Shown in pieces: positions 25,291 through 64,000 of a stretch of 64,000 nucleotides of DNA (its first letter is position 1; each line of letters opens with the position of its first letter). A model generated the notes under the pieces. That model was not told the DNA's origin. It searched no databases and saw nothing but the letters and a program-made list of their open reading frames with translations. The stretch comes from Trichoplax adhaerens (lineage: Eukaryota > Animalia > Placozoa): NCBI RefSeq assembly GCF_000150275.1, contig NW_002060948.1, forward strand, positions 4,634,336 to 4,698,335, read 5' to 3'. A program made the translations under genes and the position numbers.

Positions 25291-27582
25291 CTATTCGCAA
25301 GTAGACAAATATGATTCAATGACAATTACATTTGCTGTTTGCTCATAAAATAGTCCGCTTGTATGACTAATCTCGGGCATAACTTGTTTTTCTCTACTAC
25401 GAAGAAGCTTACGTATCTTATCACGGAATTTTCGATGCTTGTAAAAATAAACTATAGGATTAGTAAAGCTTCTAATATTGGTTGCGGAGACAGAAATAGA
25501 TCGAATTATTGCCGAATTTAAGCTATTATATTTCTGTGGAAATGATCCCATTAAAAATACCGGTCCATAGCTTAGAAGGAATACTCCAATAACGACTGAT
25601 GCGACCTTTATTAATTCGATATTAACAATAAATATTATCAGCTAATATCATATTTTACTCGTAATAATTGCTATGATTTTTATAAATCTAATAATGTCGT
25701 AATAATAAAAAATATGCGCAACTTTGAAGATCGTATAATTCGGCCTGATTTAATATCTATTCTAGTTGTAAATTATCATACGAAATACGGTACCTGAAGA
25801 ACGCTTTTTTGCAATAATTGGGTAGATTGTCGCTGTTCTTGTTTAGAAATAATCAGCCTAATATAAGTAAAGGATGTTATTGCAGCTACAAATGTAGCAA
25901 AAAATAAGAATGTATTCCAAGCTATTGATGGAATTGAATACATTCGAATTCGCGATGAAATAAGGTCGTAGGGATCACCAGGCTAGATTAATACCGAAAA
26001 AAAATTACAGATTGTCAGGCAATTTTTATTTCTGTAGAGATGGATCTAGCAAAGGGCTAAGTTGCACTGAAATTAAGATTTACTTGAGTAAGGTAAAATA
26101 TTTTCTGAGTCTTTTCATCTCTAATGATAAATATTTTTATTGTATATCATTTCTGTTACTGTAGTATTTTTATGCAGATATCTTGACGGAAGTATAGATG
26201 AGAAATAGATTCATATTAGATAATAATGAACTATAATTAAGATCTCTTGAATCAAGTTCTCTGAAGCCTCTAATTAATTTTTAAAATCTTAAGATGCTAC
26301 TTGTCGGTTATAGCTACTTCGGGTATCGAATAATCGATTAAGGCTTTTAATACTGGGTAAGCAAGTTTTGCAATCATCAAATTAACTTCGAGTTGCTTAA
26401 AAAATATAATTAAAGGCATTTCACTGCCGTTTCCTACATATCCTAAAGATATGTGATTTAAATAAAATTTTAATATTTATTTATTAAGTTTGATAAATAG
26501 ACTAATCTCCTTTTGCGATTAAAGTGATCTTAACAATAAATTATGAAAATTTTTATCCTTGTAGAATTTAGCATCGACTTAGTCCATCTAAAATTCTTAA
26601 CTACGCAAGAAAGAATACTTTGAATAGGCAGTTTCTAGAAGATAGTTAAGTAGTAAGTATTTATTCATCTTAACCGAAATTAATAACTGGTTTTGCACTT
26701 AGCTTTCAAATAATGCCTAATTACTTTAGTGCTGATTAAAAATTTAATGTATTCAGTCGGATAAGATAATGATAAATGGTACTATAATCAGAGTTATGAA
26801 AATCAATTGTAGACTTGCAATACATGGAGAACAGTAAATCTCACGAAGAAAACTCAATATCAATCGACTATTGACTCTATAATGACATACAAACTTTGTC
26901 CAGTTTTGATATGTAATATAAGTTTAACAACATTCAGTAACAAAATAATAAAGTTATTTCATTCTAGAGTAGAATTAAAGCCTATTTACTTATATTTACT
27001 ATTTAATCGCCAATAATTATTCAATCTTACCTGAATTGATAAACAGGAGAAATATCTGGGTTGATATTGTAATTTTAACAATGTTACAGCGCTAATGGCA
27101 CAGGATAAAATCCAGCAAGAAATAACGCTGAAATAATAAATCTTCCACCTTCTTCTTGGATGTAATGGATTGGAATTGATAATAAGGGGTTTACGACGAA
27201 CAGCTAAGTATCTTTCGAAACTAAGTAATATCATGAGATAGCAGTTTATGGATTCACATACCATAGATATTGCCATTACAACTTGACAGGTGTAATGTCG
27301 CACTTGACCGTACGTATTAAATTCAATAATTTCTGCAGGTATACATAAGAGACAGTTGACCAAATCAGCAATGGCTAAATGGTAAAGGAGCAAATTATTA
27401 ACTGTCTCATTTGTGGTTATTGGCATTCGATTAGGTTTAAATATAATAGTAACGCAGGTATTTCCCAGAATACCCATGACCATTATCAAAGTTAGAAAAA
27501 TGGTTATAGGAATCGACAGGAATGATGGTAAGTAGTTGTTATACATTTCATAGCCAGTTAAATTGGATAAATCTGAATCCAT
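25291..27582 (-). CDS. Orphan class A GPCR 3, 351 aa; exons 27582-27031, 25982-25794, 25605-25291
   Basis: Same two phase-0 introns. Motifs: GN, LAIAD, ERY, FSCL, TM5 SIPSIAWN (exon 2 translated by hand), FLLSYGP, NPIVY, HRKFR. The exon 3 acceptor is AAG. Confidence 0.88.
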
Positions 27583-38083: not shown

Positions 38084-38851
38084 ATGCTAATGGCTGAGTC
38101 CAACTCAAAATTTAGTTCCTTTCTAATATTAATAATAGTGCTAGCTATCCAGTTTGTCTCTATCAACAGCCAAAGCAATATAACGGTCACTTCTAATCCT
38201 CATCGTAGAAGGCAGAATCAAATCAGGAAAGTGAATCGCCCAAACTCCAACAACATCACAATTAATGTTCATTTGGTCAATCCACCGGCTACACAAGGAC
38301 CAACTCGACCTAACAACCCATGTACAAGTAATATTGCTCGAAGTTCTTGCGATCAATGTATTCATCGTAGTAGCCAATGTTATTGGTGCAATTATGATAA
38401 TACATGTCGTAATTTGCCATCAGGCCAAAGCCAACCATTTCGGGGGGATTGTGGTAATGATGCCTGGCATACTGATCAATGCATCATCACAGGAAATGTC
38501 TTACCTATCGTCATACCTGTAACAGCTGGTGTTATAGCGATAGCTGGAACCTCTTTACTTTGTTGTATGTGTTGTAGATATCGATCCAAGCGCCACGTTG
38601 ATCGTCAACTGAGAGAAATTCGTCAAAAACAAGAATCAGAACGAAAAAAGAAGAAAGATAAAGATAAAACAGTCGAACGTGCATTTAAACTGGAAGTAGT
38701 CAGACAGAAATACACAAGTAAAAATAGCAGCAATACTACAGCGTATTCATGGGAAAATACATCTAACAATCATTCAAAGCTTTTTTCCTTTAATCCATTT
38801 AAGTACAGACGTTTAGATGATGCAAATAGTAATACTATCACTGCCGTTTAA
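38084..38851 (+). CDS. PTTG1IP: PTTG1IP/PBF-like type I membrane protein (signal peptide, PSI domain, TM, basic tail), single exon, 255 aa
   Basis: Hydrophobic leader; PSI cysteine pattern C..SCDQC..CYWC..C..C...W...QC; TM followed by CCMCC; charged and basic tail with VRQKY; YRRL (YxxPhi) near the C-terminus. This matches PTTG1IP architecture by recognition, not by a search. Confidence 0.8.
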   Translation: MLMAESNSKFSSFLILIIVLAIQFVSINSQSNITVTSNPHRRRQNQIRKVNRPNSNNITINVHLVNPPATQGPTRPNNPCTSNIARSSCDQCIHRSSQCYWCNYDNTCRNLPSGQSQPFRGDCGNDAWHTDQCIITGNVLPIVIPVTAGVIAIAGTSLLCCMCCRYRSKRHVDRQLREIRQKQESERKKKKDKDKTVERAFKLEVVRQKYTSKNSSNTTAYSWENTSNNHSKLFSFNPFKYRRLDDANSNTITAV

Positions 38852-41824: not shown

Positions 41825-44076
41825 ATGGCGGGACTTCGTGATATTATTCTGATTTTGGGAATATTTCTTCCCGCAATTTTAGCTAGCAATGAAGTCCATA
41901 ATATTTTGGAAATCCTGAGAGTAAGAAGAATAAATATACTTGATCAATTTTATTTTTAAAATCTAATATTTTTCAGGTAGAATAATCATTTACTTATAGA
42001 TTACTACGATCTATCTGCTTAGTTTCAGTAGATATATTCAACACGTATTCCAATTTATTAAATCCAAACACTTGTCAAATTTTAGTGTTTAATTGTTTGG
42101 TGATCAAGTAATTAGCCACATAATTCGCTGGTTATCTGTATTTGCTCCTAAACATAACATAATGAGTTCATGTTCATTAACCATCGTACCTCCTTTTCTA
42201 ATTATGAAACTGATTGTGTTATCTCCTACCTAATCGATGGATTAAGGTATCAATTTAGTACATGTTCGCTGATTTATATCAACTAAATTACAGTTAAACA
42301 TGCGGTTAAATTAGAATGTAATAATCTTATTAGTTCAAATCAGTAGGAAGTGAATCTATTCGTACACAAAGCTAGCATGCCATTTGATAAAACTTACATT
42401 TTAAAGTTTGGAATTAAGACAGAATCTAGCTACAAAAATAGCATGTATTTTAATTGTTCCTTTTTAGACAAGTTCGTTTCATAAAACTAAGCTCTGATGG
42501 AGTAGTGATCCATGCAATTGAACTCAGTTCATCATAAATTATTATACATAATCCTGACAAAAAATCTATCAAGTCTCACTGTTAGTTACCAACCTTTAAT
42601 GCCGCATATACCTGTGTAATAGCTCAGGAAATATGCCCTAAGCCTGGAACATACTATTAATATCGCACCTTATAAATCCATTATGAGAGCTAAGGAAATA
42701 CTGATGTGAGAAAATTTCTGATAGCTGTCTTAACAACTATCGGATTTTCATACCGACATCGAAGATTTAACACTAATTTCGGAAACACTATACTAAAATT
42801 ACTAATCAAAAGTAACAATATTAAAAAGTTACCTTAATGTTAACAAGTTCATTTCTTGATTATTAATATCTAGACTCATATTTATTTAATTATCTGTTGC
42901 ACAAATAATAATTAGTGCTAACATAGATACAATCATAAATGTTTTGATCTAATTTAACATTTTGTGTTTGCTAGTCTGAAAATCGTGCGCATCGTCGTAG
43001 TAAAAGAGCCGCTATGGTGAATGCCTTTTCATTAGGTCCACTAAATTTCTGTGGTGATGTTCTGGCAAGTGCTAAGTCAATATGCGGTATAAATTATAAA
43101 ACCCCAGGAATGATAGCGAAATTTTCTAACCTATTAGCCAATGATGTACAAACATTCACTAATACTGCACTTAACCTGGCACCAGCATCACAAATAAAGA
43201 CTTCATGTAGGGCAGACATTAAAAATTTCTATTGCCGATTATTTTTTCCTTCCTGTAACGCGGCTTCTGAGTTGATATCCTACAATCTTCCAAACTGTAC
43301 TACGTACGGATTATCTTGTCCTAAAAAAGTCTATGATCGAGCCCATGCTTTAAATCTTTGCAAAGTTGTTCCTAATGGTTCATTCAGAACTGATGTATGT
43401 GTTAAGCCGTCGACTGAAGGTACTACGATATGTCCTAAACCACCCTCTAAGCTCTTAGTTCCTCAATGGTTAAAACATGAAGATAGACTTAATGATCGTT
43501 CTGCTCAAGGCATTACCTCGGCACTTAAATTTTATAACGCCTCCACCAGTTGCACAAAAAGGATGCAACAATTTGTATGCGGATCTCAACTATTTTGCTC
43601 ACCAGACAAAACACAACTATTGACCACTGCTACTCAAAGGACATGCATGAACGCATTGAAATGGTAAGTTCTATCGCTCTATGAAATAGTTAATGAGATC
43701 AATACACTTCTCGTACTTTAAATAGATTATTTTAAATAGAGCATTTCTTAAAATTTAACAGTACCGTTAAATAAATGCCATGTAGTCTCCATGCCAACAA
43801 CTAGCGTGCTGCTAATATTCAATTATGGAATTAACATGAGCAACTTACTCTAATGATGATGGTTTACTTTCTTTTGAAAATTTCATTAGTTTGCCTGTGA
43901 AAGCCAAATTAGCATTGGACAAATTCTTCGATTGCAGTCTTCTTCCACATGAAAATACATCAACTCCAATCCGTGTTCCTAATGATGCTGCCTTAATATC
44001 AGGAACAAGTCAATTATGTTACAGGCTGTCAACTATCTGGGTCCTTGTAACATACCTCTTTCTCAGATTTCTGTAA
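41825..44076 (+). CDS. Twin Frizzled-type CRD, putative GPI-anchored protein 1, 323 aa; exons 41825-41920, 42975-43663, 43890-44076
   Basis: Signal peptide MAGLRDIILILGIFLPAILA; phase-0 intron; RRSKR furin site; two 8-Cys domains; phase-2 intron splits a Cys codon (TG|T); C-terminal hydrophobic tail with no cytoplasmic domain. Confidence 0.85.
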
Positions 44077-44189
44077 TACTGTACTATTTTTGTATCATCT
44101 GTTAGCTAACTCATAATGCTAATGATTATAATATAGTACGGTAGCAGACAGATAATATTCTTAAAACTATGCACATCAATGTAACTGTT

Positions 44190-44822
44190 TGTTACAGTGT
44201 TAAATACTGTATTACAGTAGAAATAACTATGTTAGGATAATTCTGTTAGACTATCCTTATTTAGTTAACTTCTAATTTGGATATACTGTATTTTAATATA
44301 GCACTGACTTTTTATGACAGTGACACTTATACACATACTGAAATTATAATAGTTATAATAGGGAATGCAAATCATCTGCTTACAGTTCGAATCATTGTGA
44401 TTGTAATTTACTTATGATAGACTGTAAATTATCATGGAAATGTTCCGTGATAGGACATATCGTAATCTGACTATTCTGTATTAGTCATTATATGTCTATG
44501 TTCGTAAATACTGTTGTCTGCATTAAGGGAGCAGTAGCTAAAATTAATATCTAATTCAGTAAATGATTCTAATGTTAATTGTATTAACTATGACTCATGA
44601 ACTATTGAGGAATAGTATATAAATGCAGTATATCGTGAAATAAAGGAGAATTGTCCAACTTAGTGTTTAACGTAAAATACGAGGCGTTTAAGTCTTTGTG
44701 TAATCTGCTAGTAGAGCAAAAGTGTTTGTGATAGTGCAGATATCGTTCCTTGATACGTGGTTCAAGGAATTGACTTATTGATCGTATATTGCGTTATCTT
44801 GTTGCAAAGCTGTTTTGTGACA
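44190..44822 (+). mobile_element. Solo LTR, family B (633 bp), TSD CTGTT
   Basis: CTGTT|TGTTACA...TGTGACA|CTGTT exact. TGACTCA at 44591, TATATAAA at 44616, AATAAA at 44639. Confidence 0.9.
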
Positions 44823-47193
44823 CTGTTGTTAGCAAATTTTCATAGACTTATAGTATAGACTTATAGTTGATAAATACGTATGAAATGATAGAATTCTTTA
44901 CTATATTTGTTTGTGCTTATCCTTAAAATTATTTTACTAAGTGCGAAGCACTACCACTAGATTATTTCAGTAATCTGCAATTCAATAAAATATTTCAACT
45001 ACGAGTATATAGCCCTCTACTATATGACAATTAGTTTTTTAAAGTATCTAATACAAATTATAGGTTTTTAGGCAATCACATTACGGTATAGCTAGATAAC
45101 AAAATCAACAATCATTTACCCCAAGTGAGTCAAGTTTGCTATTTACCAAATATAATAACTAAAACACTCTGCTGCATCTTACCTCAAATTATTTGGAAAT
45201 AGTGTAAAATTACTAATAAGGTTATCAGACTTTAGCCGGAATCTTATAATGTATTATCAACACACAGTTGGACAGGCGGAGTTGACTAAGTGTTAAAGCA
45301 CAGTATAACTTTGTTAATTTTTATTTGAGGGCAGAAAACTTGCCTACACTCCATTATTTTTATAAGATATACAGTAATTCATAATTCGAGCCATTGTGAT
45401 AAAGTGATCTTCAACAATAAATCAAGAACTACAGTTTGTTGTAAATTTCACGATATTACATAAGTTAGGTTCATCTCACCTCTACCAAGGACTATCTGAC
45501 TATCTGAATTATTACAGCAAAATTCAGGGTTTATATATACAATTTGTTACAGAATTCTTTTTCAGCTACACAATCATACAGTAACTCGCCAATTAAGACG
45601 CAAAAACACTTGATACAATGTTATACCCTAGCGTACAACTTAAACTATTCTCGTACAATCTTGGATGGTAATCTAAGCTATATTGGGCGCTGCACTACAG
45701 CTGCACTGGTTTGAGAGGGCATCCAAAAAAATATGATAAGAGCTACGATATCTAGTAAACCTTATTGACGAGCACAAGTTAGCCTTGTTATTGAAGAGGA
45801 TCTGCAATCATTTCTTTCGTGATAATAGGTACTTGTACAATCAAACATCTAAAGTACAAGCGCGATTTATTTAGGGACTGAATTACAACTTCATTATAAT
45901 GTCGATGTCATGGTCCTTAACTTTTCTACCCATCATCTACTGTACATCTACGCTTTTTTACTGATGGCTAGTACCAAAACAAAACTTTACTCCGTCTTAA
46001 ATTGCATATGATTACCGTTCAATCGATAATATCTGTTGATAGATTGTTGTATATGTATATAATATATAAATATATAAAGATTGACGTTCTCGTTCGAAAA
46101 TCTAGAACGTGTTCAAGGCACTTTTTTACTCTCAAGTGCAGTATCTACAATATCTCTGTTGGCGCAGTGGTTAGAAGATACTTTAAAAATATCTAAGTTA
46201 AGGATACTAAGTATTACTGGAGTGAAAACCCTTCAATTATAATTATCCTATCGTCAGTTCAAGAATAAGCTCGATTTCATTTCAGCTTTTTATGATTGCA
46301 GCCTAGGCTGTATTACAGCATAATAATAGCCAAGGGATTTCGAAACATCAGCGCATGTTCATTAGTGGAGCATTTAATAATAATTCATTGCTCCCTCTCT
46401 CAAGTTCTTGGTAAACTCATATCGATATTAGGACGACAAAGATACCCTTAACTTCCAAATGTAATGTATACGAACATAACCATATGGAGAATCGGTCATT
46501 TTGTAGGCTATCTCAGCTCATCCCTACCAGAATACTACTGGATCATTTTTAGCGGTAATTAGCACATTATTATGGTAACATTTGAAGTAAATTCATGATC
46601 ATCACGTGAATTTGTTTGACATATGTCAAATATTGTAAAACAATTGTTCTCAGCATCATTTGAATATTAGTGCTATTGTGAAATAAAAGTCACGAGTAAT
46701 GCACGATCATCTAGAGTGCTGGAAATATGTGATTGATGAAAAGCAAAGTGCTTACAGCATAAGAAGTATGCATAGTATGGTATATTACTATAGATATATC
46801 TGGCTAGCTATATTAGACTGGAGGTAAGGTTAAAAAATGATATCATTCTAGTTACAGTACTTAACCCTAATTATATTAATTAATTCGATGCCAAATTTTT
46901 GTATTGATATAGTGGTACTGTACGCCGGTGAGATATTGTTATGTTTTGAAGTATTTTACTTCGGATAGTAGGATTACATACGCATTATACCCTATAATAA
47001 GAATACAGTAACAAGGATACTGGTACTAGAGTTATTCATTATAATAATTGTAATTATCAACGTGCCGATAGTATTAATTGGAGATACACGGTAGTACTGT
47101 AGCCATAACGTATTAATAACCGTGTATTAACGTAACGGTCACCAGAAACCGACGATTTCGACTTGATTATTACCAAGATCAGAAGCATTCTCG

Positions 47194-48879
47194 ATGGCTA
47201 CTATTTCTCACAAATTTGTACTTTTTCTCACCGCTATCGCTAGTACATGTCTAGTATTGGGTAATGAGTCTGCCGACTTTCGTCATTTCAAAGAGGTAAT
47301 TTATGGATAGAATAATAAAAAAAGAGCTAATTAGGTCTCCAATTATGTCTTTACTTGGTTTGTATTAATTCAATCATATAGTTTCTCGCCAAAAACAAGG
47401 TAGCAAACACGCTTAGTAAAACAAACCAAAATACGTAGTGTATAGTTTATCGACTTGAGACCATTCAGAAAAACTTCTAAACATCTAATTAATTACTCAT
47501 CAAAAGTAATTTTTAGATCATCAGGAGTTTTAAAGATCACTTTGCTACAAAATTTGGTTATTATGCCAAGACTACTCGTCATTTAATATCTTTATAAAGT
47601 TTCATATTAAAGTTCAATTGAATTAATCATAACAATTTTCTATTTATATTCATTTTAACATTACTTTCTATTATATCTTATATTCAATATCCTAAAAAAC
47701 AGAGAGAATCAGCTACAATATTAATTTAAAAACATATTCTATCTATATTTTACAGGAAATGTCCTTGAAAGAAAGATACAAAAGAGCATCACGTATGGTC
47801 ACTGCTTATTCACTGGGAACGCTTGATGCTTGCCAAGATATCGGTTCCGCAGGTGTTTATTGTGGTTATACTTATAAAATTCCCGCCGTTATCGCTCGTT
47901 TTGCAGGACAGTTAGCAAAGGATGAAAAGATTATAATTAGCGCACTCACAAATAATCCAAAATTGCCTGTGAATCAACAGTGTAAAACAGATATTAAAAA
48001 CTTTCTTTGCAATGCGTTTTATCCTGTATGTAATTCAGCGAATAAAACTGTAACCTACAACTTGCGCGATTGTGCTAAAACTGGTTTAACATGTCCCAAA
48101 TCTATCTACGATGCCTTCCACAGAACGTCTTGCAAAAACATCCCTTCAGGGACATATGCTTCCAATAAGTGTGTAAAACCATTGACAACAGATACAAAAG
48201 TTTGTCGAAAACCGAATGCTAACGCTAAGGTACCACAATGGCTAATTCATGAAGATCAACTGAATGATAATTCAGCGCAAAACCTCCAGAAATCATTAAA
48301 GAAACAAAATGCTTCAGCATCGTGTATACAGAAAATGACCCAGTTTATTTGTGGAGTACAACCGTTTTGTTCAACGGATGAAAAGTATATCTTAACCACT
48401 GGCTATCAACAACAATGTTATGATGCGCTACATTGGTAAGAAGTATTCTAATTCACTAAATTTCTGTAGTACTTTAATTGAATTCCACTACGCCATTAGT
48501 TTGTTATGGTAAAGTAGGTATATGGGATTAAAATGGGTTACAATTTATATAGCCTACATACTTATACAATCTGATTCTCCTAATCTATAGGCCGTAGATA
48601 ACCTGTTAGTATGTAAGATACAGTGAATAAAATGATCGCAAATATAGCTTGACATGTAAGCTAATTTACTTTAATTCTTTCAAATATAGCTTGCCTCCTA
48701 AAGCACAACTATCCTTGAAGAAATTAATTGACTGCACCCTTTTACCTAACGCAACAACAGCAAAGCGATTCCAAATACCTTTTGATTCAGCAATAGTATC
48801 AGGAGCGTATACCTTTTCTTATAATGCTGTGATACTTTGGTCATTAGTTGCATCGCTTGTCCTTCATTTGTTAAATTAA
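47194..48879 (+). CDS. Twin-CRD putative GPI-anchored protein 2, 323 aa; exons 47194-47295, 47756-48435, 48690-48879
   Basis: Signal peptide MATISHKFVLFLTAIASTCLVLG; RYKR furin site; CKTDIKNFLCNAFYPVC is a strong FZ-CRD core; TG|C split Cys codon; hydrophobic C-terminal tail. Confidence 0.87.
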
Positions 48880-51800
48880 CCAAGCTACTGTATAAATGGC
48901 AGTATATACTTAAACTATAGCAGTTTAAGGGTGCACAAAGTTAACGACAGTGTCTGCCCATCGAGAATGTATATTATATTTTTCGCTGGAAAAGTGTCAC
49001 TATTACGTAGGCATTTAAACTTAAAGTTTTTCTAGTAAACTTAATTACACTATCTGTATACTTGCACGTTTTTAATACTATTTAAAAGTAGATTAGATAT
49101 AAAGTATTACCATAGCCAAAGTTCTATTATAACATAAAAAACTGTATTATTTTATAGTCATCGTTTATTGTTATAAGAAATTGGAAGGAATAAGGAATGA
49201 AATCGTTTGCCACTCAGGGTGACAAAGAGAAATCTCTTTGATTTCATGAGGTGGATATTTTAGCCAAAAGAGCTTCTTAATCTCATTAATAAAGTTTTTC
49301 GATAGGGGCTACTCTGGATAAATGTTATTGTGTCTCGCTGAAGTCAATTGTAACATGTTTGTTGTTCTGTCAACTAGAAAAATAATAAACTTAGCAGATA
49401 TAAACAATAACTTTGGAAAAGCTTGTGCTGCACTTTAATTAGAGTGATACCGGTATATTAGAAGAAAGAATCCTTTACTGCGGATTCTATATTTACAGTG
49501 CAACAGGAAGTATACAATAACGCGATATTTCTTTAAAATGTCTTGATAAAGGACATTTTTAGGAATAGTTGGCTTAATATAAAAGAATTTTTAAATATTA
49601 AACTTAAATTTAAAGTAATGAGTGACACCTTAATTAAGTAAACCAATTCAAGGTAAGAGTATAACCTAGTGTGGAATTTATGAATCGCATTACCTTTTAG
49701 TAAAGCATCAAATTAGCTCGATGTGAATATTATTAGTGCTCATAGTCCTTGCTCATCTCCAAGTATATTCTGTTCGAGTGTAAAACTATCAGCTCACTGA
49801 CTAAAAATATTATACTTAGCCTGATAAATTAATCAATAAGTCTCATAGAATTTTAATCCTCGTGATGGCGTGGGAAAGAAATTTATCTGCTATTTGTAAA
49901 CGCAAATACCGTTGTTATAATAACTTTTGCAGTTTGATATGATGCTGATTTAACTTAGCATCGGTTAACGGTATGAGCGTCATTTAGAATATGTCGCAAA
50001 TTGATATACTAAACTAGTTCGCAATAATTGACGGTATCTTATGTCTTTACTATATCAACTGGAACTACACACATCCTGTATACAAAACCAAAAATTTCAT
50101 AATGGATTGCATGAAAGACTGTATCATAAGGCTTTTACCTCGGAATGCTTGAATGACTGAATCACTTTCAAGTAAATTCACATTGAAAGTGGCCCTATAA
50201 TTTGTTCCTATAGTAGCAGCTATCAACTAACATCATCAACAATAATTGTTTCTAATGGCTTTATTTACAAGTATTGATACTTTACTGCTACACATTCAGC
50301 CTTTAGCATAACTTGCACATTGAAAATTCCAGTAGTAATTTCATTGCGGAACAGGATAATATTTCGATCAGAAATGGCCTATATAAATAGTCTTTATAAA
50401 GCTGTGGATAATCACTGACCAAAGATATCTTATAAACTGTATTATTTGTACTTCAATATTGAAACTATTGTAAATAGAACTCAAAGAAGCTGCCCTAAGT
50501 AACTTTTTCAGGGGATACTTATAATCTCTATTTTACCAGAATCTATCAATAACACATGTTCATGCTCAATATTACCGTTCCTACATTCAAGATGAAGTAT
50601 CTATTTCAAGGTCAATATCACATAGCACATTATATTGTAAACTTTCTAAGTAACCGCTTAAAGCAGCACTTAATATGCCGTATCACCATATCATCTTATA
50701 AATTGCCAGTCATAGAATGATTTAATTTTATTGCTGGCAAAGTTTGGCCAAAGCGTGAAAGCAGGATTAGCATTCGATTTTTTACTGGTTGTAACTTCTG
50801 TGAAACGATAATCATATTTCTCTTACCTTTGTCGTTGTTAATTTATTTATTTCTAGAAATAAGTATAAAATAACGTTACAATTTTACATAACAATTAACA
50901 ATTATTACTACGTTAAGTAAAGCAAGTAAAAAGCGGTTGCATACCGTAAACATGTGCACTGGCTATTTCCGCATCCATGAATAATTGTAATTATTTGCTT
51001 TTAAATCGATAAACAGACAGCACTGATGCAAATAAAATGAATAGAAAATTTATAATCAGCTATACATGTAAACAAGTCTTTCACCGTATAATCGAGTTTA
51101 TGGATGTAATGATGTTATGAAGCAAGGGATAGCAGCCGCCTTCTATATAAGATTGCAACTTGTACAATTTCTGATATAGGCATGTATGCTCACATTAGAA
51201 TCCAATTACATAGATTTCAGAATTTGGATTATACCGTATTGACTCCAATATTCAGCACTAAAACGTTTTATACCATATAAATCCTTTCAGTAGTCTAAAA
51301 AAAATACTGTACATTTGCAATCACTCTTATAGCACTTCAGTAGCTTTATTGTACATGGTACCTTTTAAGATAGAAATTTTGTAATCAGTCAAAGTGATAT
51401 TGTTGACGTATTTACCACTGTAATTTGCCTATCACTTTTCTGCGCTTTTTCTCATGCATAAATTCCTCCTTTAGATGGCCGATAATAGAGCGGATTGTTC
51501 CTGGCTTTTATGTAAAGGAGAAACATTTTATACCTAGATGCTACGACTGTCAATTTTACAAAAATGTATAGAACTTAACTTGATATCATCCCTTGCGGGG
51601 CATAAAATTCTGCTCACTTTCAGCAAGATGCAATATCCTATCGACTTAGGGTTTTATGCTTGTTTATTTTTTCTCAGTATTAGAAATTTAATGTTTACCT
51701 TACGATTGTAAACTATAAGATAATGGTAATCTTGAAAAGGACTGCACTCGTGTCTTGTCACTGTTGAAAAGTCATGTATTTCCTAAAATCCATAGACTGC

Positions 51801-52116
51801 TACAGCACTAATTTTAAAATTTGAATAAGTCGCTGAGCTCAAAAAACGAGGTAAACCATAACAAATTCAGTAATTATCATAGGTAAAGCTGTTCCTATAC
51901 ATGATCGGCTATAACTGAACAATATACTGTAGTTTATAGCTGAAACTTGCATGATGCTTTGATGGTAAGCTCCTAATCGTGATAGCATACCATGTAAACG
52001 TTGAATGCATAGAAAATGAAACGTTTACTATAGTTAAATTGGTAATACCCTAATGTACTACTGTATATGACAGCATAGATAAATTAAACAATCTAGAAAT
52101 GATATTTCCTTATGTT

Positions 52117-52142
52117 ACTTATGTTACGTTCGTAACATAAGT
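52117..52142. repeat. Perfect 12-bp inverted repeat ACTTATGTTACG-TT-CGTAACATAAGT
   Basis: Read directly from the sequence. Confidence 0.75.
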
Positions 52143-53078
52143 TACTATGTTTTAATGAGAACGTAGGAATGTGCAGTTCTATACTTAGCGATTAATACGC
52201 AATGGAGTATCGTATTGTAGTATGTTATGATGGTGTGGAACACAGTTGAGAAGTCCGTTCGATTAATTTTACCTACGCATTTTAGATTTTTTACGAGGTC
52301 TACAAACAAGTATACAGCATGTTTACTCGATCACTATTTATTCTTTATCCACAAATACCTTAAAAGTATATTATTCTTAGGTTTCTTAAATCAAATCACG
52401 GATCTCTCGCTCCAAAAGATATAAAATAATTACCGTATCTATCATATTGTTTTTGAAACCTTAAAGCTCTATTTAACTTCATATATACTCGTGAGTATGG
52501 ATAAGTCAGATATGTACGTAATAAAGTTTGGTGCACTGTACATGACTAGATGCTTACGATGTGCAGTATCAATTTTGTAACCGATATTCATCAATTTTCT
52601 ACTGTATAGCGTAATCCTAAGTAGAATACAGTCTTCTTTAACATATATCAAATCAAATTTAAAAGAGTCTATAAAGATACTAGCATCTACTCTCCTAGGA
52701 ATATTAAATTCATTACTAGTATAAAAGAATTAACAATAAGCACTACTGTAGATGCAATAATGCTTATTATAGTATCTGCCCATTCGGCTTCATGTAAACG
52801 AAGCACACGCGTAATAGTCTTGATGATTTATTTACTAGATTCATTATAGATTCCATGTGCAACTAGCATTCAATGCAGGTTACACTAACGGCATAGCTTA
52901 TCTTAATGTTATTAGGATTGCAGTCTCCATTCCTATAAAGACTGCTACGCATACTGTTGTGAGCTTACTGTTGCACAACTTTCGTTAAGTTAAGCGAAGC
53001 TAAACTTAATTACTGAAAGCAGCGCAGCACTGGATCTCTTTTTTTACTAGATATTTGCCACTTTTTCCATAATATAAG

Positions 53079-53814
53079 TGTGACAATCCAAGTTAATACG
53101 GTACACTCTATAATTTTCTCGAAAAGGGATATCCAATCCAGTATCTTTCCACAACCGTCTCACTTTTCGTTGACTTGCTAGACACACAGATCGTAATACC
53201 TCGTATACTTTCTTTGCATTAACGGTTCAAGAGAGGGTGGGACTGTAGGAGGGACTAGTGGATCCACAGATCGTAATACTTTGCATACTTGTTTACCGAC
53301 AATGAGTAGAATGTTTCAGTATATGGTACTACCAGCATACAGTATACAGTACAGTACTGTATTAATACTATTATACAGTCGAAGAGCCAGATGTCACTTA
53401 TCATCGTACGATAGCTTTATAGCTTTAAAGTATTTGCATAACTTCATGCATATGCGAATGTAGATATATATTTACATAAATTCCTGTATAAGCAAGGTTA
53501 TTAATCAATTAGTAGCATATTTCAGTGTGTGGTACTACCAGCATAGAGTCTACTTATGCGAAAACATCTAGCAGATATACAGTAAAATAGCCAGATGTTA
53601 CTTATCATCCTACGATACCTTTAATCCAACCACTTTCAGGTCTATTCCCGAGGCGGTTGATTAATTAGTTAATTAATTCATTGATTACCAACCGTAATTA
53701 GCGTTTTGTGCACGCAGATTGCAGAATCGCTTGCTGCTTATGGGGGCGTAATACCACCTGATAGCGTATAATACTGTGTAGCACAGTATGGTACCGTAAG
53801 TTGTACTCGTAACG
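53079..53814. mobile_element. Diverged LTR-like element with internal duplications
   Basis: ATAAG|TGTGACAATCC...CGTAACG|ATACG (4 of 5). The left end resembles that of 18446. Internal direct repeats with ~80-bp period (CACAGATCGTAATAC at 53185 and 53265) and ~205-bp period (GGTACTACCAGCATA..AGCCAGATGT). Confidence 0.4.
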
Positions 53815-54103
53815 ATACGCAATCGTCATTTACGTCATCATCATATCACGAGTTGATGCTATAATTAATTAACTACAACTACGTTCAACTTGGCATTTAG
53901 CATAATCAAAGATTGGAGTTATAACTAACTACCCATTTATTAACGAAAATTTTCCTCCAATATCAACTAACTTGATACATAGCTGTTCCTGCTATTAGTG
54001 AAATTAAGCCAACGGACATAAATTGCAAGCAAGCAGTTCTTCAAGCCATCAGAGTTATTTATTTCTTTAACATCAACATCGCCGGATTGAAGAATAGGAG
54101 AAA

Positions 54104-55558
54104 ATGCGATTAATACTTAGTCAATTCTATGCCTTCATCGCTATTTTAACCATTTTACGTAATATTAAGGTATAGTAAGGGTTAGCTAAATCACATTGAT
54201 GGCCTTTTATTAATCAATTACTAGCTTACTGTGCAAGATTAAGTGATGACAACTTTAGATCAAGAATAGCATCATCTCATGTTGGAAGATGATGATAATA
54301 CTGTAGCATGAAAATCTGGCACGATTTTAAAGTTCGTTATTCTAATCGTTTTATATCTAGGTCACTGCTTCATCTTCCTTTGAAAAATCAACATCTGGTT
54401 TAGTTTCCATTAATGCATATCCTTTTGGATCGATCGCGTCTTGCAAGCAGATTCCTCAAGCAGCTGTTAATTACTGTGGGCTTAATTATAAAACGGCGGC
54501 GAGTTCTGCCAATCTCGCTCCAGAATTAACCTTAGTTATATACCATATTCTGATGGTTATTACTAATCTTCCTAATATTCAAGCGTCGGATCAATGTGTT
54601 CAAAATGTTAAACATTTGTACTGTGGTTTAGTATTTCCGCGCTGCGATGCCAGTAAAAGTCAAATTACGTTTAATACAACCAACTGTTATGAGGCTACTG
54701 GAGCATGTTCATCGGTAGTTAACAGTGTTATTCGACGAATTAAACTATGTCAGTTTGCTCCACATGGCAATTTTGAATTGGACACCTGCGTGAAACCTCC
54801 TACTATCAGCTATCTTCACTGCCCTAGTAATCCAAATCTTGTTACTGTACCTAAATATCTAATACTGAATCGAATTTTAGTCGATGTAGCCACAACATAT
54901 GATGTGGATCTCCTCAGGGATAAAGGAGCTACAGAGCAATGTATTCAAAATTATGTTAATTTATTATGTCAATCGATACCATTCTGCTCCCCAGATAAGA
55001 AATCATTAATGACAACAGTGACCAAAGAAATGTGCTATAATGCTGTAAACTGGTAAGTCTTTCATAGATTACTTTTTGATTCCACTGGTAAAGTTCCTGC
55101 TTATTCCTTTTCATCCGTATTGATTTTAATTCACTACGTATATACTTAGTTTTAAAGCTTGACAATTTTATTTTAAAATATCTCAATCAATTGCTAAGAA
55201 ATTAACGATAGTTCTTAATAGTGACAAAATGTTGATAAGTATTTCACTTAGCTGACTTATTATATTTAGTTTATACACTTACACTATTTCAGCTTATCAT
55301 TCTTAAAATAAAGTACTTTTATCTATATTAATTTTCACTGAAGAATTTCAATTTTTTATTAGCCTTCCAAAAAGTCTACAAACAGACCTCAAGAGCTTTT
55401 TCAAATGTAATCAATACCCGAATGCTTCCAGTCATCATATCCACATTTCTCACGATTATACATTCGTAGGAAGAGCTCAATTTCTACATTTGAATATAAA
55501 TGCCTTGTTACTCCTTGCAATAACTTTACTGTGTTTCCATACCATTCTTCTGGAGTGA
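54104..55558 (+). CDS. Twin-CRD putative GPI-anchored protein 3, 317 aa; exons 54104-54169, 54361-55052, 55363-55558
   Basis: Signal peptide MRLILSQFYAFIAILTILRNIK|VTA; same intron phases; 16 aligned Cys; exon 3 translated by hand as LPKSLQTDLKSFFKCNQYP...ALLLLAITLLCFHTILLE*; no furin site. Confidence 0.85.
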
Positions 55559-57889
55559 TTAAGTTTATTGGAATGCTTAATATTGAATAGTCTACTATAG
55601 CTAGCTTAGAAATAGAACATTTGAAAGTCAAAATAACTATTAATTTATTCACGATTTTTTCCGATGAAACATTCGGCAACATTTAGGTTAAATAAATACG
55701 AAATCGGTTGCAACTTGATTGCCGAAGGCATCGACAATTTAAACAACTTTTAACTATCCAGATTAATTAACTTTTCGGATTGTAGTCTTTTACAGGATAA
55801 TAGACTTTGAATTCATTCAAAACTGAGAACCAGTATGGTAATGTACAGCAACTTTTATCGAAAATACCGTAAATTGAATTTTAAGGTAGTACTTTTTGAG
55901 TCTTTAAGTTGATAATTCTTCGTCATGTATGATTATAAGCTGTATCACTGTGGGCTTAACAATTTAATTACTGTTACAACTATAACAATATTGCCAATTA
56001 GGTTACGACACAAAAGTGTTAATATGCTTAAACTTGTAAATTTTGTGATTTAGTAGCTTAATTTCACGTTTGTACATAGTTTATTTTGGTAGCTGTAATA
56101 TGAGCATATAATATTTCTAATATCTAAAACTACCATCAGTTTTTTAAATTGTCAGATGTAACATCGAGTAATTTTGTACAAAGCTTGTTTTCATTTAACA
56201 ATTAACTGTTTTTTATAAAGAGTCATCGTTTTCTATACAAAGCTAATAATTTGTAAAGATGCATCCTGTAATTGTACTTCCAATGAAAGATCATCAAGGT
56301 GAATGTCGTCATGACTATAAATTCAAACCTTACTGAAATAAATTTATTAGATATATAAATTGTTAAAATTTAAGTTCGCTTCTTATTTATTCTGAGACTG
56401 CAAACAAATTTATAATTACACCATTTAGAGCTGATATCTAAAATACCGTTATATCATTGTAAATGCATAAGCACACTGGAAACTACAATTTTAGACAAAT
56501 TAACTACATTCCGTTTACTAATTTTCTAATATCAAGAGTCAACTATTAAAAATGATACCGGTAAAGTTTCTAGCGAAAAACATTTTATCTTATTCAAGCA
56601 GGTATTATTAAGTCCATATTAACCAAAAAAACTAATTGCTATATAAGCTACATCTATATATGTATTTAATACCAACTTTATACGTAAAGCCGGCTTCATT
56701 TCATTACTTTACGGCGACGGGAGTTTGTACTAATATATAATTAAACGTGTGCAGGCTAAGGCTAATCATCAGAACTATAATTTGCTTTAACTCCAAAAGA
56801 GAAGGTACTTCAACGGCAATTGTACTTACTGCAAGTTACTAGAAATACTTAACTAATCGCAATATGTGCTGAACACCGAGACTAAATAAATGTAAATATT
56901 CAAAACTTATACGGTAACACATAATTTAAAATGATTTTAAGGTCATAGTATCGTAGCAGAATATGAATGTTAAATATTGCCCGTATTATTTACTCTCAAT
57001 CTCGTACCGACTAAAATTCTAAAAAAGACAGTAAAAATTACTGAAAATTTAAATTATGTCTTTATTGATGTACTGTATCTCTCCAGTTTGTCAATACGTA
57101 AATATAATATTACAGCGAATGAAATCTTAAACATTCAGATACAATTCGGTTATTGCTACAGTCATAAATAATTTATTCAATTACAGGCTTCAGGACATGA
57201 TTAACTCGTGATTTCAGACTGCTCTTTGTAAAGAAATTTTTTTTCTATGAAATAGCAGCTATAGAGCACTTGTACCATATGATACATGCCAGTCACGATG
57301 TTTAAAAATATACTTAACCTATGACCTACAGTATATCTATTTTAGATAGCAATAGTAGCCAACTAAGCATGAAATTAGCTTTCATGAAGCAAATCTAGTC
57401 AAATGAATAAGATAATAAATATTGTTACTTGTAGTAAAGGAACTACTTCAAAATATGATGATATCATTATATTGCAGATGTCAATCATGTAGAGCTGATT
57501 TATTTTGCATTATAAAAACATCCATACTAGATTGCAAAGCACACATAATCTATTACCAATCTTAACATTTGACATGTTACAGTTGAAATCATTACATGCT
57601 AACAAACCTTAGCAAAGTTCTGTTAATACTATATAATCAATGATGATTTATACGACGCCATCGCATAGATGAATAATGTCCCAGCAACACCATTAAGGCA
57701 TTTATGTTAGTGTAATAATCGGGTAGCTGCCAAAATTAAATTAACTTTTAGTACATTGTCGTTTTCTCGCATAATAAGTAGGCTACCTCATTATCATTTT
57801 AATATAATGACAGAAGAAAAGAACGTTACCCGCAATTGTACATCCGCCTACTTATCTAAGTAAAAATTACTTTCAATAACAAATAGTTC

Positions 57890-57950
57890 ATGAATAAGGG
57901 TGCCGTAGTGCACAATGAAAAATGAATAAGGGTGCCATAGTGCATAATGA
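57890..57950. repeat. 32-bp-period tandem duplication (ATGAATAAGGGTGCCRTAGTGCAYAATGA x2) upstream of CRD gene 4
   Basis: Two copies at 57890 and 57922 with 2 mismatches. Confidence 0.8.
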
Positions 57951-58100
57951 GATAACATATAAGCCTTCAGAGAAAAAATATATCTTTCAAATATTTCAGT
58001 TGGGGTACAACTTCAATTACGGAGATTAACATTATACTTTAAAAACCACAGAGTCCGAGTTCGATTTCTCTAATTATAACCATTGTTAGAAAAGATTAAA

Positions 58101-60914
58101 ATGAAGTTTCAACTGCTTTGGATCACGATAATAATGGCTTTCTCGTCCTTAATCCAGGTATCGAAGACAAACTATTCCTTATACTGCTTTGAAAGGTTAT
58201 ACTTATATGTTTAGAAAGATTTCAAGGAGAGTTTTTTCGCTGTTTATATGATAGTACATTGGACTATTTAAATGATAGAATACGGTAGGTTTTGTATCAG
58301 TCTCGAAAGCAATCTAATTTTATAGTTTTGGCTTTCAATTTGTAGTAATTCGTCTAACGATTTTTCACATTTTCAGTAATAAATCCAAATGTCGAGGGTT
58401 AATGGTCAATTGTAATTTATTGCTACCATCTATGGGTCATAAAGTCTTTGATCTCATATTGACCTGTAGACTTTCAAATTTAATTTTTATGGTCTATGAT
58501 AGTCCTGACACAAATTTGTTATACAAGCAAGTATTTTATTTAAAATTGAAGTCAAGTGTAGAACAAAATGCACGCTTGTTAGTTCATTTTAAGTACAAAT
58601 TCAATAGAGATTACTAAAATCTTGTAACAAGATGTTGCTTGAACACACATAGTACTCATATATTTATAGTATCAAATCACTTTATACTATTGCAGTTTCT
58701 ATCTTTCTATTTATTACTTGTCGTTACAAAACAGCTTTACAACAAGATAACTTAATGAACGATCAACCAGTCGATTCCCTGAACGACGTATCAGGGAGCA
58801 GTATCTACTCTATTAGAAACTATTTTCCTATACTAGTAGACTACAAAAAGACTTAGACGCCTCGTATCTTACGTTAAACACTAATCATAAGAAGTAACTA
58901 TATTATACGATTTATCGCATTTATATACTCTTTTACAATAGCAAAGACATCCTAGTTAGTAATATTAATGTTGAAACCTGATAATGAATCAAAAGCTAAT
59001 TGTATCTACTGCTACTTAATGAAGACAATAGCATTTACGAACATAGACATCGAATGGCTGATACAAAATTGTCAGATTATAATATGTCCTATCACGGAAC
59101 ATTTCTACGATAATCTACTATCTACCATAAGTAAATTACAATCACAGTGATTTGAATTGTAAGAAGATTATTCTCGATTCCCTAATTAAATTACTAATTT
59201 CAGTAGGCTGTATATATCATCATAAAAGCTGGTACTATATTTAAATATCACATATCTAAATTAGAAACTCTTCACATAAGGGTAAATTAACAAAATTATC
59301 CTAACATAGATGTTTGTATTATAATCTCGATATTACAGAGTACAGCACTGTAACACTTGCATATTTCATAATGTTTATAAATGTTACTGATGAAATTGAA
59401 CACCGAGCAATCGCTAGCTAAATGCTATCCAAACTAAGATTGGCTAAAAATATGTGCGTTTACTAATTTCTTACGTTTTCTTTGTCGTAAAACATCAACT
59501 GGGTGGGTCATCGACCCTATTCTTGCAATAATTTGCATGTAACTATAATTTTCGAGTTATTCATATGTGTTTCGGCATTACACAAGGTTAATTTTATGTA
59601 TGTGTTAAGGTCAATCCTTAACATATGCATTCATAGAATAGTTGTGATCGTAATGACTTTAATCTTCATCTGTTATTCTAGCTGACTGATTTTGTGTCAT
59701 CTTTAATAAACTGATATTTTTTGTTGATTAATTTAGGATGTTAATACTTTATCACCGACTAAGAGGGGAAAAAGATCAACTGTTAAAGCTTACTCATATA
59801 ATTCATTGACCTCCTGCGCCAATATTGGTAATATTGCTACATATTGTGGTGTGAATTATCCAGTCCCTAATGTTATTAAAACCGACGCCACTCGACTTGT
59901 AGTCGCAGCCAAGGCTTTAGTGAATTACATTAAAAATGGACCACAATTCAATGCTCCTGCTGCTTGTGTCAATGATATCAAAAACACATATTGCAGTATC
60001 CTTTTCCCACGTTGCGATTCTAAACGCAATGAAGTTAGCTTCAATACTAGCAATTGCATCAACTCTTATAATAATTGTCCCGACAGTGTGAAAAAAATCC
60101 TTCCGTCTTACATAAACTGCGACGTAATACCAAAAGGAGCATTCTACCTGAATGATTGCATTAAACCTCCTTCGTTCAATCTAAAAAACTGCCCTAACCC
60201 TCCAAGCAATGTTTTAATACCGAGATATTTAACTATGGATCCCCTCCTAGTAGATACCTCTATACCAAATTTACGATCATTTATGCAGACTCAAGGCAAC
60301 AATAAGCTATGTATCCAAAGTTTTGTTGATTTCCTTTGCGCTGATATTCCATTCTGTTCGCAAGATAGAACTATGTTGTTAACCACAGCTACCACCGGAA
60401 AATGTCAATCCTCATTTTCATGGTAAGTAGAGTTGTAATAGCTTAATTATCAATTTGTAGTTAAGGTCCAATTTACTGAATTATCAATGCTTTGCCCGTA
60501 TCAAAACGCTATCATAAATAGTTATAGTAAAAGGATAAACAATAAAGTTAATCTTTTATTTTACCGTGTGTTTTGTACCTTTAGAGCAAGAGCATATCCT
60601 TTAATTGCTAATGCAAAATATGTATAGTAAAATATGTATAGATATAGTCCACCATGTACAAGTAATTATAAGAATGTTGGGCACGGTACTAATTTGATAT
60701 TATATCTCTTAGTTTACAGCCAATCACACAAGCTGCTATGAAATATAATTTGCAATGCAGCATCTTTCCAGATGCGAATGTCAGCAAGGCTTATAATGTG
60801 CCATCAGGCACAGCTTATACCAGCAAATCATACAATAATAGTCCAAGTCAAATCATTATAGCTACATTAATTACTACTTTTATGATTTTTGTCAATGTAG
60901 TAATCCTATCGTGA
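58101..60914 (+). CDS. Twin-CRD putative GPI-anchored protein 4, 314 aa; exons 58101-58157, 59737-60422, 60713-60914
   Basis: Signal peptide MKFQLLWITIIMAFSSLIQ|; KRGKR furin site; CVNDIKNTYCSILFPRC; TG|T split Cys codon; exon 3 translated by hand as LQPITQAAMKYNLQCSIFP...IIIATLITTFMIFVNVVILS*. Confidence 0.85.
58722..59355 (-). mobile_element. Diverged family B solo LTR in intron 1 of CRD gene 4 (antisense)
   Basis: Colinear with 36303-36933; flanks CTTGT/CTTGC match 4 of 5. Confidence 0.8.
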
Positions 60915-62462
60915 TGGGTGAGTGACCTAAATTTCTATCTTTACGTTTTCCATCGCGAATACTATTCTATTTCTGAAATTTTCGGATAATACGTAACAAT
61001 TATTATAGGTAAATCTTAAAATTTGCTATCTTTAAGAAAGTATGGCAGCTACTCATATTGCGAGTACTGTAATATTTGTTAGTTTGGTACTATAGTTTTG
61101 CTTTAGGTTATTAATTTCTAATACTTAAGTAGCAGATGTAGCTATCTAAGGAAGTTTACATGTTCTATTCACAAAACTGTAACCTTTAGCTATAGTAATA
61201 TAAAAACGACCTGAATCTAACATATATTTCACATAAGTTATATACTAAATCAGCGTAGCTATTAGCAATACTTCATCAACCGATACCCATAGATTATTTT
61301 CTATGTCAGTTGCGAATTAAAAAAAACTCTTCTATTTCTTTAATTTTAAGTATGGTGATAATTTTGTACAGCATTTTTTTAACACTTATTACTTTAACAT
61401 TATCTAAACAGAAAATTTATAATTTACTATGACTTGACCATTGACTTAAATTATCATTTGATACCATTACCAGATCATAAAAATATGCCTGTGACCTTTT
61501 AGTATTGGAGCTTGTATTTACTATTATTACAGATGATGAAATCAACATTTTAACTTCAGTTCTCATTTCTATTACATAAAATCCACTAATTTGTAATGTC
61601 AATATTACGGCCTGCAACTCTCCATTAATGCACGTAAATGTGGAAACTTTCCAATATGACTATTCAGTTTTATGTCAGTTAGTTGATTCTATTTCTAGCC
61701 CCAAAGCTCTCCGATCAACAGTTCTACATAAATTTGTGTCCTAAAAATGCAATCCTTTAGATTATTTCTGCATGAAATCTTGCTCCTTAAAATAACATCA
61801 ACACTTGTTAGGCATCTACTCAAATGTTCCTATAAGCTAGCATTGGGCTATCGTATTTCTTTTACATCATTTCGAATTAACTTGATGCTTACATTGCGAT
61901 GCTTTCCAATCAACAATTCTATTTTAAAATATGAGCTGGAAATCTTTAGTTCGGATTATGTTACATGGCTAAGCTTGTTGGTCTATTTACAACATTAACA
62001 ATAACTAATCAAAAGCTCTTACAGAATGTTATTGCCTTGGCTGAAAACATAACTTTGCGATGACTAATTTCATTCTACAAGATGTGTATGCTTCAACTTT
62101 TTCATTACAGATGCTACCAGAATATTCCTTATTCAATATTTCGTTTGAAATATTGCAAACTAACTAAGCATTATGAAAATAGATACGTATACTAGTCTAT
62201 CTACGTATATCGAAAGTCGAAAGAAAAATAACGCGTAAATCGATTAAGTTTACATAATTACTAAATTATAATTGTTAGTAAGTTGAAACTGGAATTAAAT
62301 TACAAGCATGAAGTGTCGAAATCTAACAGTTCCATATATCTACTCTCAAAAGTGATGAATTTTCTTAATAGCCTGCAAAGCAAATTTCACTACCATTATC
62401 ACGTTATTCAATAGCACAAAATCTAATGTGCTTTAATTAATACTAAATATCGAAAATTATAT

Positions 62463-63107: not shown

Positions 63108-64000
63108 TGTAGAGTAGTGCTGTAGAATATCCCGTAATGCTTCGTGTGAGCTATATTTCATTATATGCATCGTAAACTTTTAATGCTACTTATGTGTAAC
63201 ATTACATATTGTGCATGCATACTGCTGATTTCTATAATTCTGAGGTTAAAGGTAATCATTATTTTGGCCATTAAATAATGCGAAAAATTCTATTACCTAG
63301 CAAAAGTTTTTGCCAGCAATCTAACAGGTTGTCACGAAACAAGTCTTCGAATATCATAAGCTAAAATTCAGCTGATAGTCATAAGACCTCAGAAGGCAAT
63401 TCTATTAAGATTAACGTACTATTAAAGGTCGTAGTAGTTTATGCCTAAAACTTAGTAATAATTTGCCGCTATGTAATCACAAGACAGTTTTAATAGAACC
63501 TTTTATTCTCCCACTGCAAAGGATAATGTATAGTAGGCGGGACAACCAATAATACTTGAATAATATCAGATTACTTGAAGTTGGCATTCAGAGATAATTA
63601 TTCTTAATGCTACGTTTGTTTTATTTAATTAATCATCCTCGTTTGCAATATAATTGGTGTAAAATTGGTTATCACGTCTACATCATGTGATCTATTTCCC
63701 TAATGAAGCTGAGCTAAAGAACGTTATAAATACTTGCGCTTTACTGATGACTTGCAGCAATTTTCTCTTACCAGTTTAAGCCTATTTTCATCAATTACCT
63801 CCACAACTAATCATTATGATGAGAGCTATTACTTCTTCCATATTAGCTGCCTTAATTATCGCGCAGGTAAGTTTCAATAGTGAAATAATTCATAATCAGG
63901 TCTAGCTAGTTTAGCAGAAAGAATAAAGAAAATTATTTAGAAAATGAGAATCATTTAGTTACCGAATAAAACTTCCACTTCTAACATCAAGTGTATAATA

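Follow-up and report, generated by a model that had tools for sequence, protein, structure and literature searches.

A 64,000-nt window of AT-rich animal DNA (GC about 30%) from Trichoplax adhaerens (contig NW_002060948.1, positions 4,634,336–4,698,335, forward strand) was shown to carry a tandem array of co-oriented genes. Overall, these are probably best explained as expressed genes encoding membrane-tethered binding modules, each built from two eight-cysteine Frizzled (Fz)-type cysteine-rich domains (CRDs). Coordinates given below are positions in this window unless the contig is stated.

Sequence reading and scripted exon arithmetic gave four complete genes on the + strand (g1 to g4), each with three exons and encoding 323, 323, 317 and 314 aa, respectively. 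All introns of these genes were of the GT..AG type, with intron 1 in phase 0 and intron 2 in phase 2, the latter cutting a TGT/TGC cysteine codon after its second base in every gene. This agrees with an earlier note on the same DNA, made from the letters alone, which had described four co-oriented genes of 314–323 aa with one exon structure and a split cysteine codon. The description of g1 to g4 thus stood, whereas the number of genes did not: a fifth tandem copy (g5) begins at the end of the window, and about 25 paralogs are present in the genome. Gene g2 was identified as TRIADDRAFT_57631 (XP_002113444.1) of T. adhaerens, all of its exons being exact substrings of that protein, and the g2 ortholog of Trichoplax sp. 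H2, TrispH2_004609, differs by two residues; the g2 model is therefore based on NCBI models in two strains. The g1 model is based on canonical splice sites and homology. Mutual blastp comparisons of g1 to g4 gave E values of 1e-31 to 1e-68, which places the likeness of these paralogs far beyond chance. The exons are as follows:

41825–41920, + strand: g1 exon 1, start codon, signal peptide and phase-0 donor GTAAGA (sequence reading).
42975–43663, + strand: g1 exon 2, RRSKR basic site, CRD1 and most of CRD2, with 14 cysteines and ending in the TG of the split cysteine codon.
43890–44076, + strand: g1 exon 3, final two CRD2 cysteines, small-residue S-G-T site, hydrophobic tail and stop.
47194–47295, + strand: g2 (TRIADDRAFT_57631) exon 1, signal peptide; exact substring of XP_002113444.1.
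47756–48435, + strand: g2 exon 2, RYKR site, CRD1 and most of CRD2; Pfam Fz 36.2 bits against a cut-off of 32.1.
48690–48879, + strand: g2 exon 3, end of CRD2, S-G-A site, hydrophobic tail and stop; exact substring of XP_002113444.1.
54104–54169, + strand: g3 exon 1, signal peptide (sequence reading).
54361–55052, + strand: g3 exon 2, CRD1 and most of CRD2; donor at 55052 backed by RNA contigs.
55363–55558, + strand: g3 exon 3, end of CRD2, hydrophobic tail and stop; RNA joint 55052>55363.
58101–58157, + strand: g4 exon 1, signal-peptide exon of 19 aa; RNA joint 58157>59737.
59737–60422, + strand: g4 exon 2, KRGKR site, CRD1 and most of CRD2.
60713–60914, + strand: g4 exon 3, end of CRD2, hydrophobic tail of 20 residues and stop; RNA joint 60422>60713.
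63816–63866, + strand: g5 exon 1 (fifth tandem paralog), signal peptide; its large exon lies past the window end, at contig positions 4698458–4699075.

The mature parts of g1 to g4 share 16 cysteines whose spacing is the same in all four, arranged as two units of eight that are each followed by C-xxx-P and separated by a linker of 12 residues. In all four proteins the layout is C-x9/10-C-x39/40-C-x8-C-x6-C-x13-C-x6-C-x12/13-C-xxx-P for domain 1 and C-x10-C-x39-C-x8-C-x5-C-x15-C-x5-C-x14-C-xxx-P for domain 2, so that the Fz core motif C3-x8-C4-x6-C5 is present as C-x8-C-x6-C in the first and as C-x8-C-x5-C in the second. By profile alignment, family cysteines fall on C1–C5, C7 and C8 of Frizzled-3; the eighth, assigned by position only, would be C9, and the absent canonical pair, likewise by position, would be C6/C10. 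Pfam detected no NTR, Frizzled seven-transmembrane (7TM), kinase or protease module in the large exons or in the full-length g2 ortholog. Cysteine layout and Pfam results thus agree with the architecture given earlier, two CRD units with no 7TM, netrin, kinase or protease module.

Pfam Fz (PF01392) matched all four large exons with E values of 1e-6 to 1e-8 (1.4e-6 for g1 exon 2). These matches were borderline, as the gathering score of 32.1 bits was exceeded only by g2 (36.2 bits), with g4, g1 and g3 at 30.5, 29.3 and 27.9 bits, and they covered domain 1 only. The full-length g2 ortholog scored 38.1 bits, and 17 of 21 paralogs matched at E<0.01. A profile of the 21 paralogs searched against 1.84 billion protein representatives found 221 proteins at E<=0.001. 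Among these were multi-domain proteins of Asterias rubens, Oculina patagonica and Oryzias melastigma (E 2e-22 to 2e-13), which Pfam showed to be arrays of 6–11 canonical Fz domains, and the link to the canonical Fz domain is therefore significant at the level of sequence. When a 72-sequence profile was compared with all PDB sequences, only the CRDs of Ror2, Frizzled, Smoothened and sFRP were matched (best E 2.4e-5), in each case through domain 1. A word-indexed homolog search with the same profile gave nothing new beyond placozoan matches. Direct comparison of the two domains (hhalign) gave 96% probability and E 2e-9, and their cysteines line up; going by this alignment, the two domains are homologous and go back to an internal duplication.

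Further support came from an AlphaFold2 model of the g2 ortholog (database protein P0001, whose exons 2 and 3 are identical to those of g2) computed from a 72-row alignment, with a mean predicted local distance difference test score (pLDDT) of 86 and a predicted template modelling score (pTM) of 0.77. In an exhaustive VIA scan of 48,161 PDB chains, Fz-type CRDs made up 12 of the 13 best matches, with Z scores of 4.4–6.5 over 95–114 residues, and both domains were matched. Domain 1 (residues 58–168) was closest to ROR2 (Z 6.5), Smoothened (6.1), Drosophila Nrk (6.0), Fz4 (5.6) and sFRP3 (5.0), and domain 2 (residues 170–288) to MuSK-Fz (6.0), Sizzled (5.1) and Fz7 (5.0). Foldseek against PDB found no match at E<=0.001; its top matches, the CRDs of Smo, MuSK, Fz8, FZD3 and ROR2, had E values of 0.3 or worse, a list that agrees with the VIA scan and is weak alone. 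On this model, the proteins have a predicted, mainly helical fold that is superposable on solved Fz-type CRDs, and the case for the fold would lie in the specificity of the match list and not in the strength of single matches. The earlier note had proposed AlphaFold and Foldseek for this purpose, and Fz-type CRDs did head the structural matches for both domains, with modest scores. Folate receptor, glypican and NPC1 were considered as other folds and rejected, none of them being among the top 50 structural matches. Matches in the ESM Atlas all scored below 0.9 and are leads only: they included unnamed clusters labelled as ciliate, green alga and oomycete, and a folate-receptor cluster at 0.81. 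Both hhalign and the structural matches identify the C-terminal half of the proteins as the second CRD. Taken together, the Pfam matches in the paralogs, the PDB profile search, the structural matches and the hhalign comparison bear out the earlier assignment, and both repeats are supported as Fz-type CRDs.

Contigs from four public runs were aligned to positions 55000–60999 of the window, covering the region from the end of g3 exon 2 through g4. Spliced contigs were found in three runs from three studies, one run being declared as RNA-Seq. The joint of g3 intron 2 (55052>55363) was present in runs X7 and X9, and those of g4 intron 1 (58157>59737) and g4 intron 2 (60422>60713) in runs X6, X7 and X9, all three exactly at the predicted positions. 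The last exon of g3 continued unspliced to about 56368 as 3′ untranslated region (UTR; contig contiguous over 55362–56368), and contigs of the last exon of g4 ran unspliced beyond 60999. Since both last exons run on unspliced, the stop codons of g3 and g4 are terminal. No RNA contig of g3 or g4 was spliced past the stop codon into further transmembrane (TM) exons; such splicing would have spoken against the proposed architecture. For expression by cell type, the placozoan cell-atlas main texts and supplements examined contained no usable entry for genes of the family.

Two other observations were made in the same region. In the 3′ UTR of g3, contigs of two runs from different studies contain a 5-base insertion (ATACA) at 55584 compared to the window, probably a strain polymorphism. 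Within intron 1 of g4, positions 58800–59400 were covered in run X4 (DNA-like) at a depth of 270–520, against 5–10 nearby, with many base differences; this segment is probably a repeated or mobile element.

A search of the 105.6-Mb T. adhaerens assembly (1414 contigs) with a profile of the four large exons found 28 exon matches, corresponding to about 25 genes. Five of the matches lie in tandem on the contig of the window, and the others are clustered on contigs C1412, C1404, C1393, C1408 and more. Identity between paralogs was 21–47%. Large exons could be read in 26 cases, 20 of which had 14 cysteines and ended in W (TG|GT), so that the intron splitting a cysteine codon is a family-wide feature; the remaining six include broken exons and exons read past the donor. 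A tree of the local array separated (g1, g2) from (g3, g4, g5).

The earlier note had also suggested a possibly lineage-specific set. A restriction to placozoans was not upheld, since relatives were found in octocorals, a hydrozoan and a sponge. Named relatives of the same size and layout, all of them uncharacterized proteins, were present in Xenia sp. (323 aa), Dendronephthya gigantea (315 aa), Hydractinia symbiolongicarpus (357 aa) and Oscarella pearsei (362 aa, a TM variant). Besides, many unlabelled transcriptome and metagenome contigs, one of them from a Tara metagenome, were among the relatives. The Xenia, Dendronephthya and unlabelled proteins share the length and the hydrophobic tail. 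Most matches are nameless, and the named bilaterian ones were all canonical multi-Fz arrays, not the double eight-cysteine architecture. Branching deeper in the tree, among the sequences of placozoans, cnidarians and sponges, was poorly supported, and no conclusion was drawn from it. In many cnidarian-type or unlabelled relatives a conserved N-P-F-D-x-G-P stands directly before the first CRD cysteine, and the called open reading frames (ORFs) of such relatives stop at the W where the placozoan exons also end. The position of the split-cysteine intron may predate the split between placozoans and cnidarians.

Each of the window genes was found to have a 1:1 ortholog, 57–70% identical, in contigs of other samples, which, going by the orthology, would represent other placozoan lineages. 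Ortholog pairs had values of 98–100 in the Shimodaira-Hasegawa approximate likelihood ratio test (SH-aLRT). The g1 exon 2 ortholog, for example, is 69% identical and retains 14/14 cysteines, and the layout of g1 exon 3, including the ISGTSQL stretch, is unchanged in it. For three ortholog pairs (62–69% identical) the proportion of non-synonymous differences (pN) was 0.17–0.23 against a saturated synonymous proportion (pS) of 0.72–0.75, with 14/14 cysteines kept. As pN lies far below pS and all cysteines are kept, the paralogs are, on comparison of their coding sequences, old and under purifying selection. The argument put forward earlier, that open frames and conserved cysteines argue for function, agrees with the low pN/pS and the 14/14 cysteines of the orthologs as far as selection is concerned. 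A pseudogene or an annotation artefact was ruled out by the open frames, the spliced RNA and the purifying selection.

These data also bear on the possibility that the family serves in surface recognition or adhesion, with CRDs that bind protein or glycan partners on self cells, prey or microbes and that were diversified by tandem duplication as in immune families. The family is indeed large, tandemly arrayed and fast-diverging, and some Fz-type CRDs are known to bind protein ligands such as Norrin. However, 1:1 orthologs and low pN/pS characterize stable, conserved paralogs and not rapid birth-and-death evolution or positive selection, and no adhesion-type module is present. We consider such a role unlikely.

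An N-terminal hydrophobic signal sequence was present in g1 to g4, and all four proteins were shown by a hydropathy script to end in a hydrophobic run of 14–20 residues with 0–1 residue after it. On inspection, candidate omega sites (S-G-T, S-G-A, G-R-A, S-K-S or N-N-S) were located 7–11 residues before the tail. In the g1 ortholog the surroundings of S-G-T are unchanged and the tail sequence has diverged. Most full-length relatives (300–345 aa) share the terminal hydrophobic tail, and a few have a TM helix and a charged cytoplasmic tail instead, so membrane tethering looks like a conserved theme of the family. For the window genes, the mature protein is likely to be anchored by glycosylphosphatidylinositol (GPI) on the outer leaflet of the plasma membrane. 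Thus, signal peptide, small residues and terminal tail fit the GPI signal proposed in the earlier note, and the anchor itself is still a prediction from inspection.

Upstream of the CRDs, g1, g2 and g4, and not g3, contain a basic convertase-type motif 10–15 residues before the first CRD cysteine:

42990–43004, + strand: RRSKR of g1, convertase-type motif.
47777–47788, + strand: RYKR of g2, convertase-type motif.
59761–59775, + strand: KRGKR of g4, convertase-type motif.

Among 62 full-length members, 22 had RxxR or [KR]R within 25 residues before the first cysteine, compared to 13% of background windows (binomial p 5e-6), which suggests that an N-terminal propeptide may be cleaved at the basic motif.

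Some of the results weigh against tethered Fz-type modules. Each domain has eight cysteines, whereas the canonical Fz domain has ten, forming five disulfides. The structural Z scores of 5–6.5 and the Foldseek E values are modest, and the residues aligned to the lipid groove of Fz8 are, by eye, not obviously conserved. As to the tether, the hydrophobic C-terminus could be a true TM anchor or could be removed, which would make these type I membrane or soluble proteins with no GPI. In line with this, a TM helix precedes a charged cytoplasmic tail in the Oscarella protein and in two unlabelled relatives. In g1 to g4, however, the chain ends 0–1 residue after the hydrophobic run, without the charges of a cytoplasmic stop-transfer signal; small S/G/A/N residues stand 7–11 positions upstream of the tail, and the same tail layout recurs in the g1 ortholog and the octocoral relatives. 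A TM or soluble form therefore seems rather improbable for the window genes.

On the reading favoured here, that of tethered double CRDs, each gene would encode a glycoprotein of the secretory pathway with a signal peptide, a short pro-region, two packed eight-cysteine CRDs and a C-terminal GPI-type signal, the pro-region ending at a basic convertase-type site in three of the four genes. Without a signalling module of its own, such a protein would act as a tethered module, either capturing a ligand or passing it on to a signalling receptor that shares its membrane, and the divergence of about 25 paralogs would correspond to diversified ligand specificity. The usual ligands of Fz-type CRDs are hydrophobic or carry a lipid, examples being the palmitoleate of Wnt, sterols and fatty acids, and for this reason a hydrophobic or lipid-bearing molecule is rated the most likely ligand class, although only tentatively. 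Because two of the ten canonical cysteines are absent and the Fz8 groove residues are not obviously conserved, lipid binding is proposed by analogy.

A narrower possibility is that these are membrane-tethered Wnt decoys or co-receptors, whose CRDs would bind lipidated Wnt and sequester it or hand it to Frizzled/LRP. The fold is of the Fz type, and GPI-anchored RECK and glypicans are well known as Wnt modulators in other animals. T. adhaerens possesses a working Wnt system with three Wnts, two Frizzleds and a single sFRP, in which Dkk, WIF-1 and Cerberus are missing (PMC13128682), a gap that such modulators would fill. On the other hand, about 25 paralogs that are 21–47% identical contrast with three Wnts and two Frizzleds, the domains are no nearer to the Frizzled/sFRP clade than to ROR, Smo and MuSK, one canonical disulfide is lost, and the Pfam scores are borderline. 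A dedicated Wnt role appears improbable. A broader proposal would be an ancient non-bilaterian class of GPI-tethered receptors for lipid or lipoprotein ligands in placozoans, cnidarians and sponges, some of them acting as placozoan Wnt modulators and others capturing sterols or fatty-acylated signals. We regard this as speculative and quite unlikely in its full form; if true, it would mean that the Frizzled CRD served as a free-standing unit at the cell surface, either before it became joined to 7TM and kinase receptors or in parallel with that.

Elsewhere in the window, at least three rhodopsin-family G protein-coupled receptor (GPCR) genes were found in tandem on the − strand, with exons at 2994–3536, 13277–13600, 14466–15002 and 26986–27582. 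Three of these exons matched Pfam 7tm_1 (E 1e-5 to 1e-12); that at 13277–13600 had no Pfam match and, by eye only, resembles a C-terminal GPCR exon. Directly upstream of the CRD array, a single-exon ORF of 255 aa (38084–38851, + strand) was predicted to encode a protein with a signal peptide, one TM helix, a lysine-rich cytoplasmic tail and a small cysteine-rich region with a weak, below-cut-off Pfam match to PSI/integrin-plexin (E 8e-4).

No publication on a GPI-type family of double CRDs, or on the locus tags of its members, came up in the literature searches; one on a sponge aggregation factor, which did come up, has no bearing on the family. The earlier note had called the family one it could not name. 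This holds for the literature searched and not for the databases, since several members carry the automatic UniProt name 'FZ domain-containing protein'; the domain assignment itself is already in databases and is not new. A survey from 2012 counted 304 Fz-CRD sequences in 11 animal genomes and left two-thirds of them aside, namely those not belonging to the Frizzled/sFRP clade (PMC3516229). Tools for shRNA knock-down and electroporation exist for Trichoplax (PMC13128682).

The Frizzled CRD is a key ligand-binding module of animal signalling, with the Wnt lipid, sterols and Norrin among its ligands. A conserved family of about 25 free-standing, probably tethered double CRDs is thus of interest in an animal that has only three Wnts and two Frizzleds. 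Such a family might bring to light further kinds of CRD ligand, or an early way of dealing with Wnts or lipids.

Compared to known systems, the family shares with sFRP/Sizzled/Crescent and with Platynereis FzCRD-1 to -3 a signal peptide and an Fz-type CRD without a 7TM or enzyme module. However, sFRP is soluble and consists of one ten-cysteine CRD and an NTR domain, and Platynereis FzCRD-1 is secreted with a single ten-cysteine CRD (PMC4669655), whereas the placozoan proteins have two eight-cysteine CRDs, no NTR and a putative membrane-anchor signal. With Frizzled/Smoothened and ROR/MuSK, which gave the best structural matches, they have in common the extracellular CRD fold and the C-x8-C-x6-C core. 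The CRDs of those receptors are joined to 7TM or kinase modules, and the window proteins end after the hydrophobic tail.

RECK, glypicans and folate receptors likewise combine a GPI tether, which is predicted here, with a helical cysteine-rich module that binds lipids or other ligands; neither Pfam (glypican, Kazal or Folate_rec, in the large exons and the full-length g2 ortholog) nor the top 50 structures gave a match to these families. Corin also has two Fz-type CRDs in one membrane-bound polypeptide, but is well known as a serine protease of the type II transmembrane class that also carries LDLa and SR domains; none of these domains is found in the window proteins. The multi-Fz arrays found by the family profile (Asterias XP_033633819, Oryzias XP_036071594 and Oculina) likewise contain tandem Fz CRDs. 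They differ in having 6–11 canonical CRDs of 48–84 bits per domain in proteins of 860–2280 aa, with immunoglobulin or LDLa modules in Asterias.

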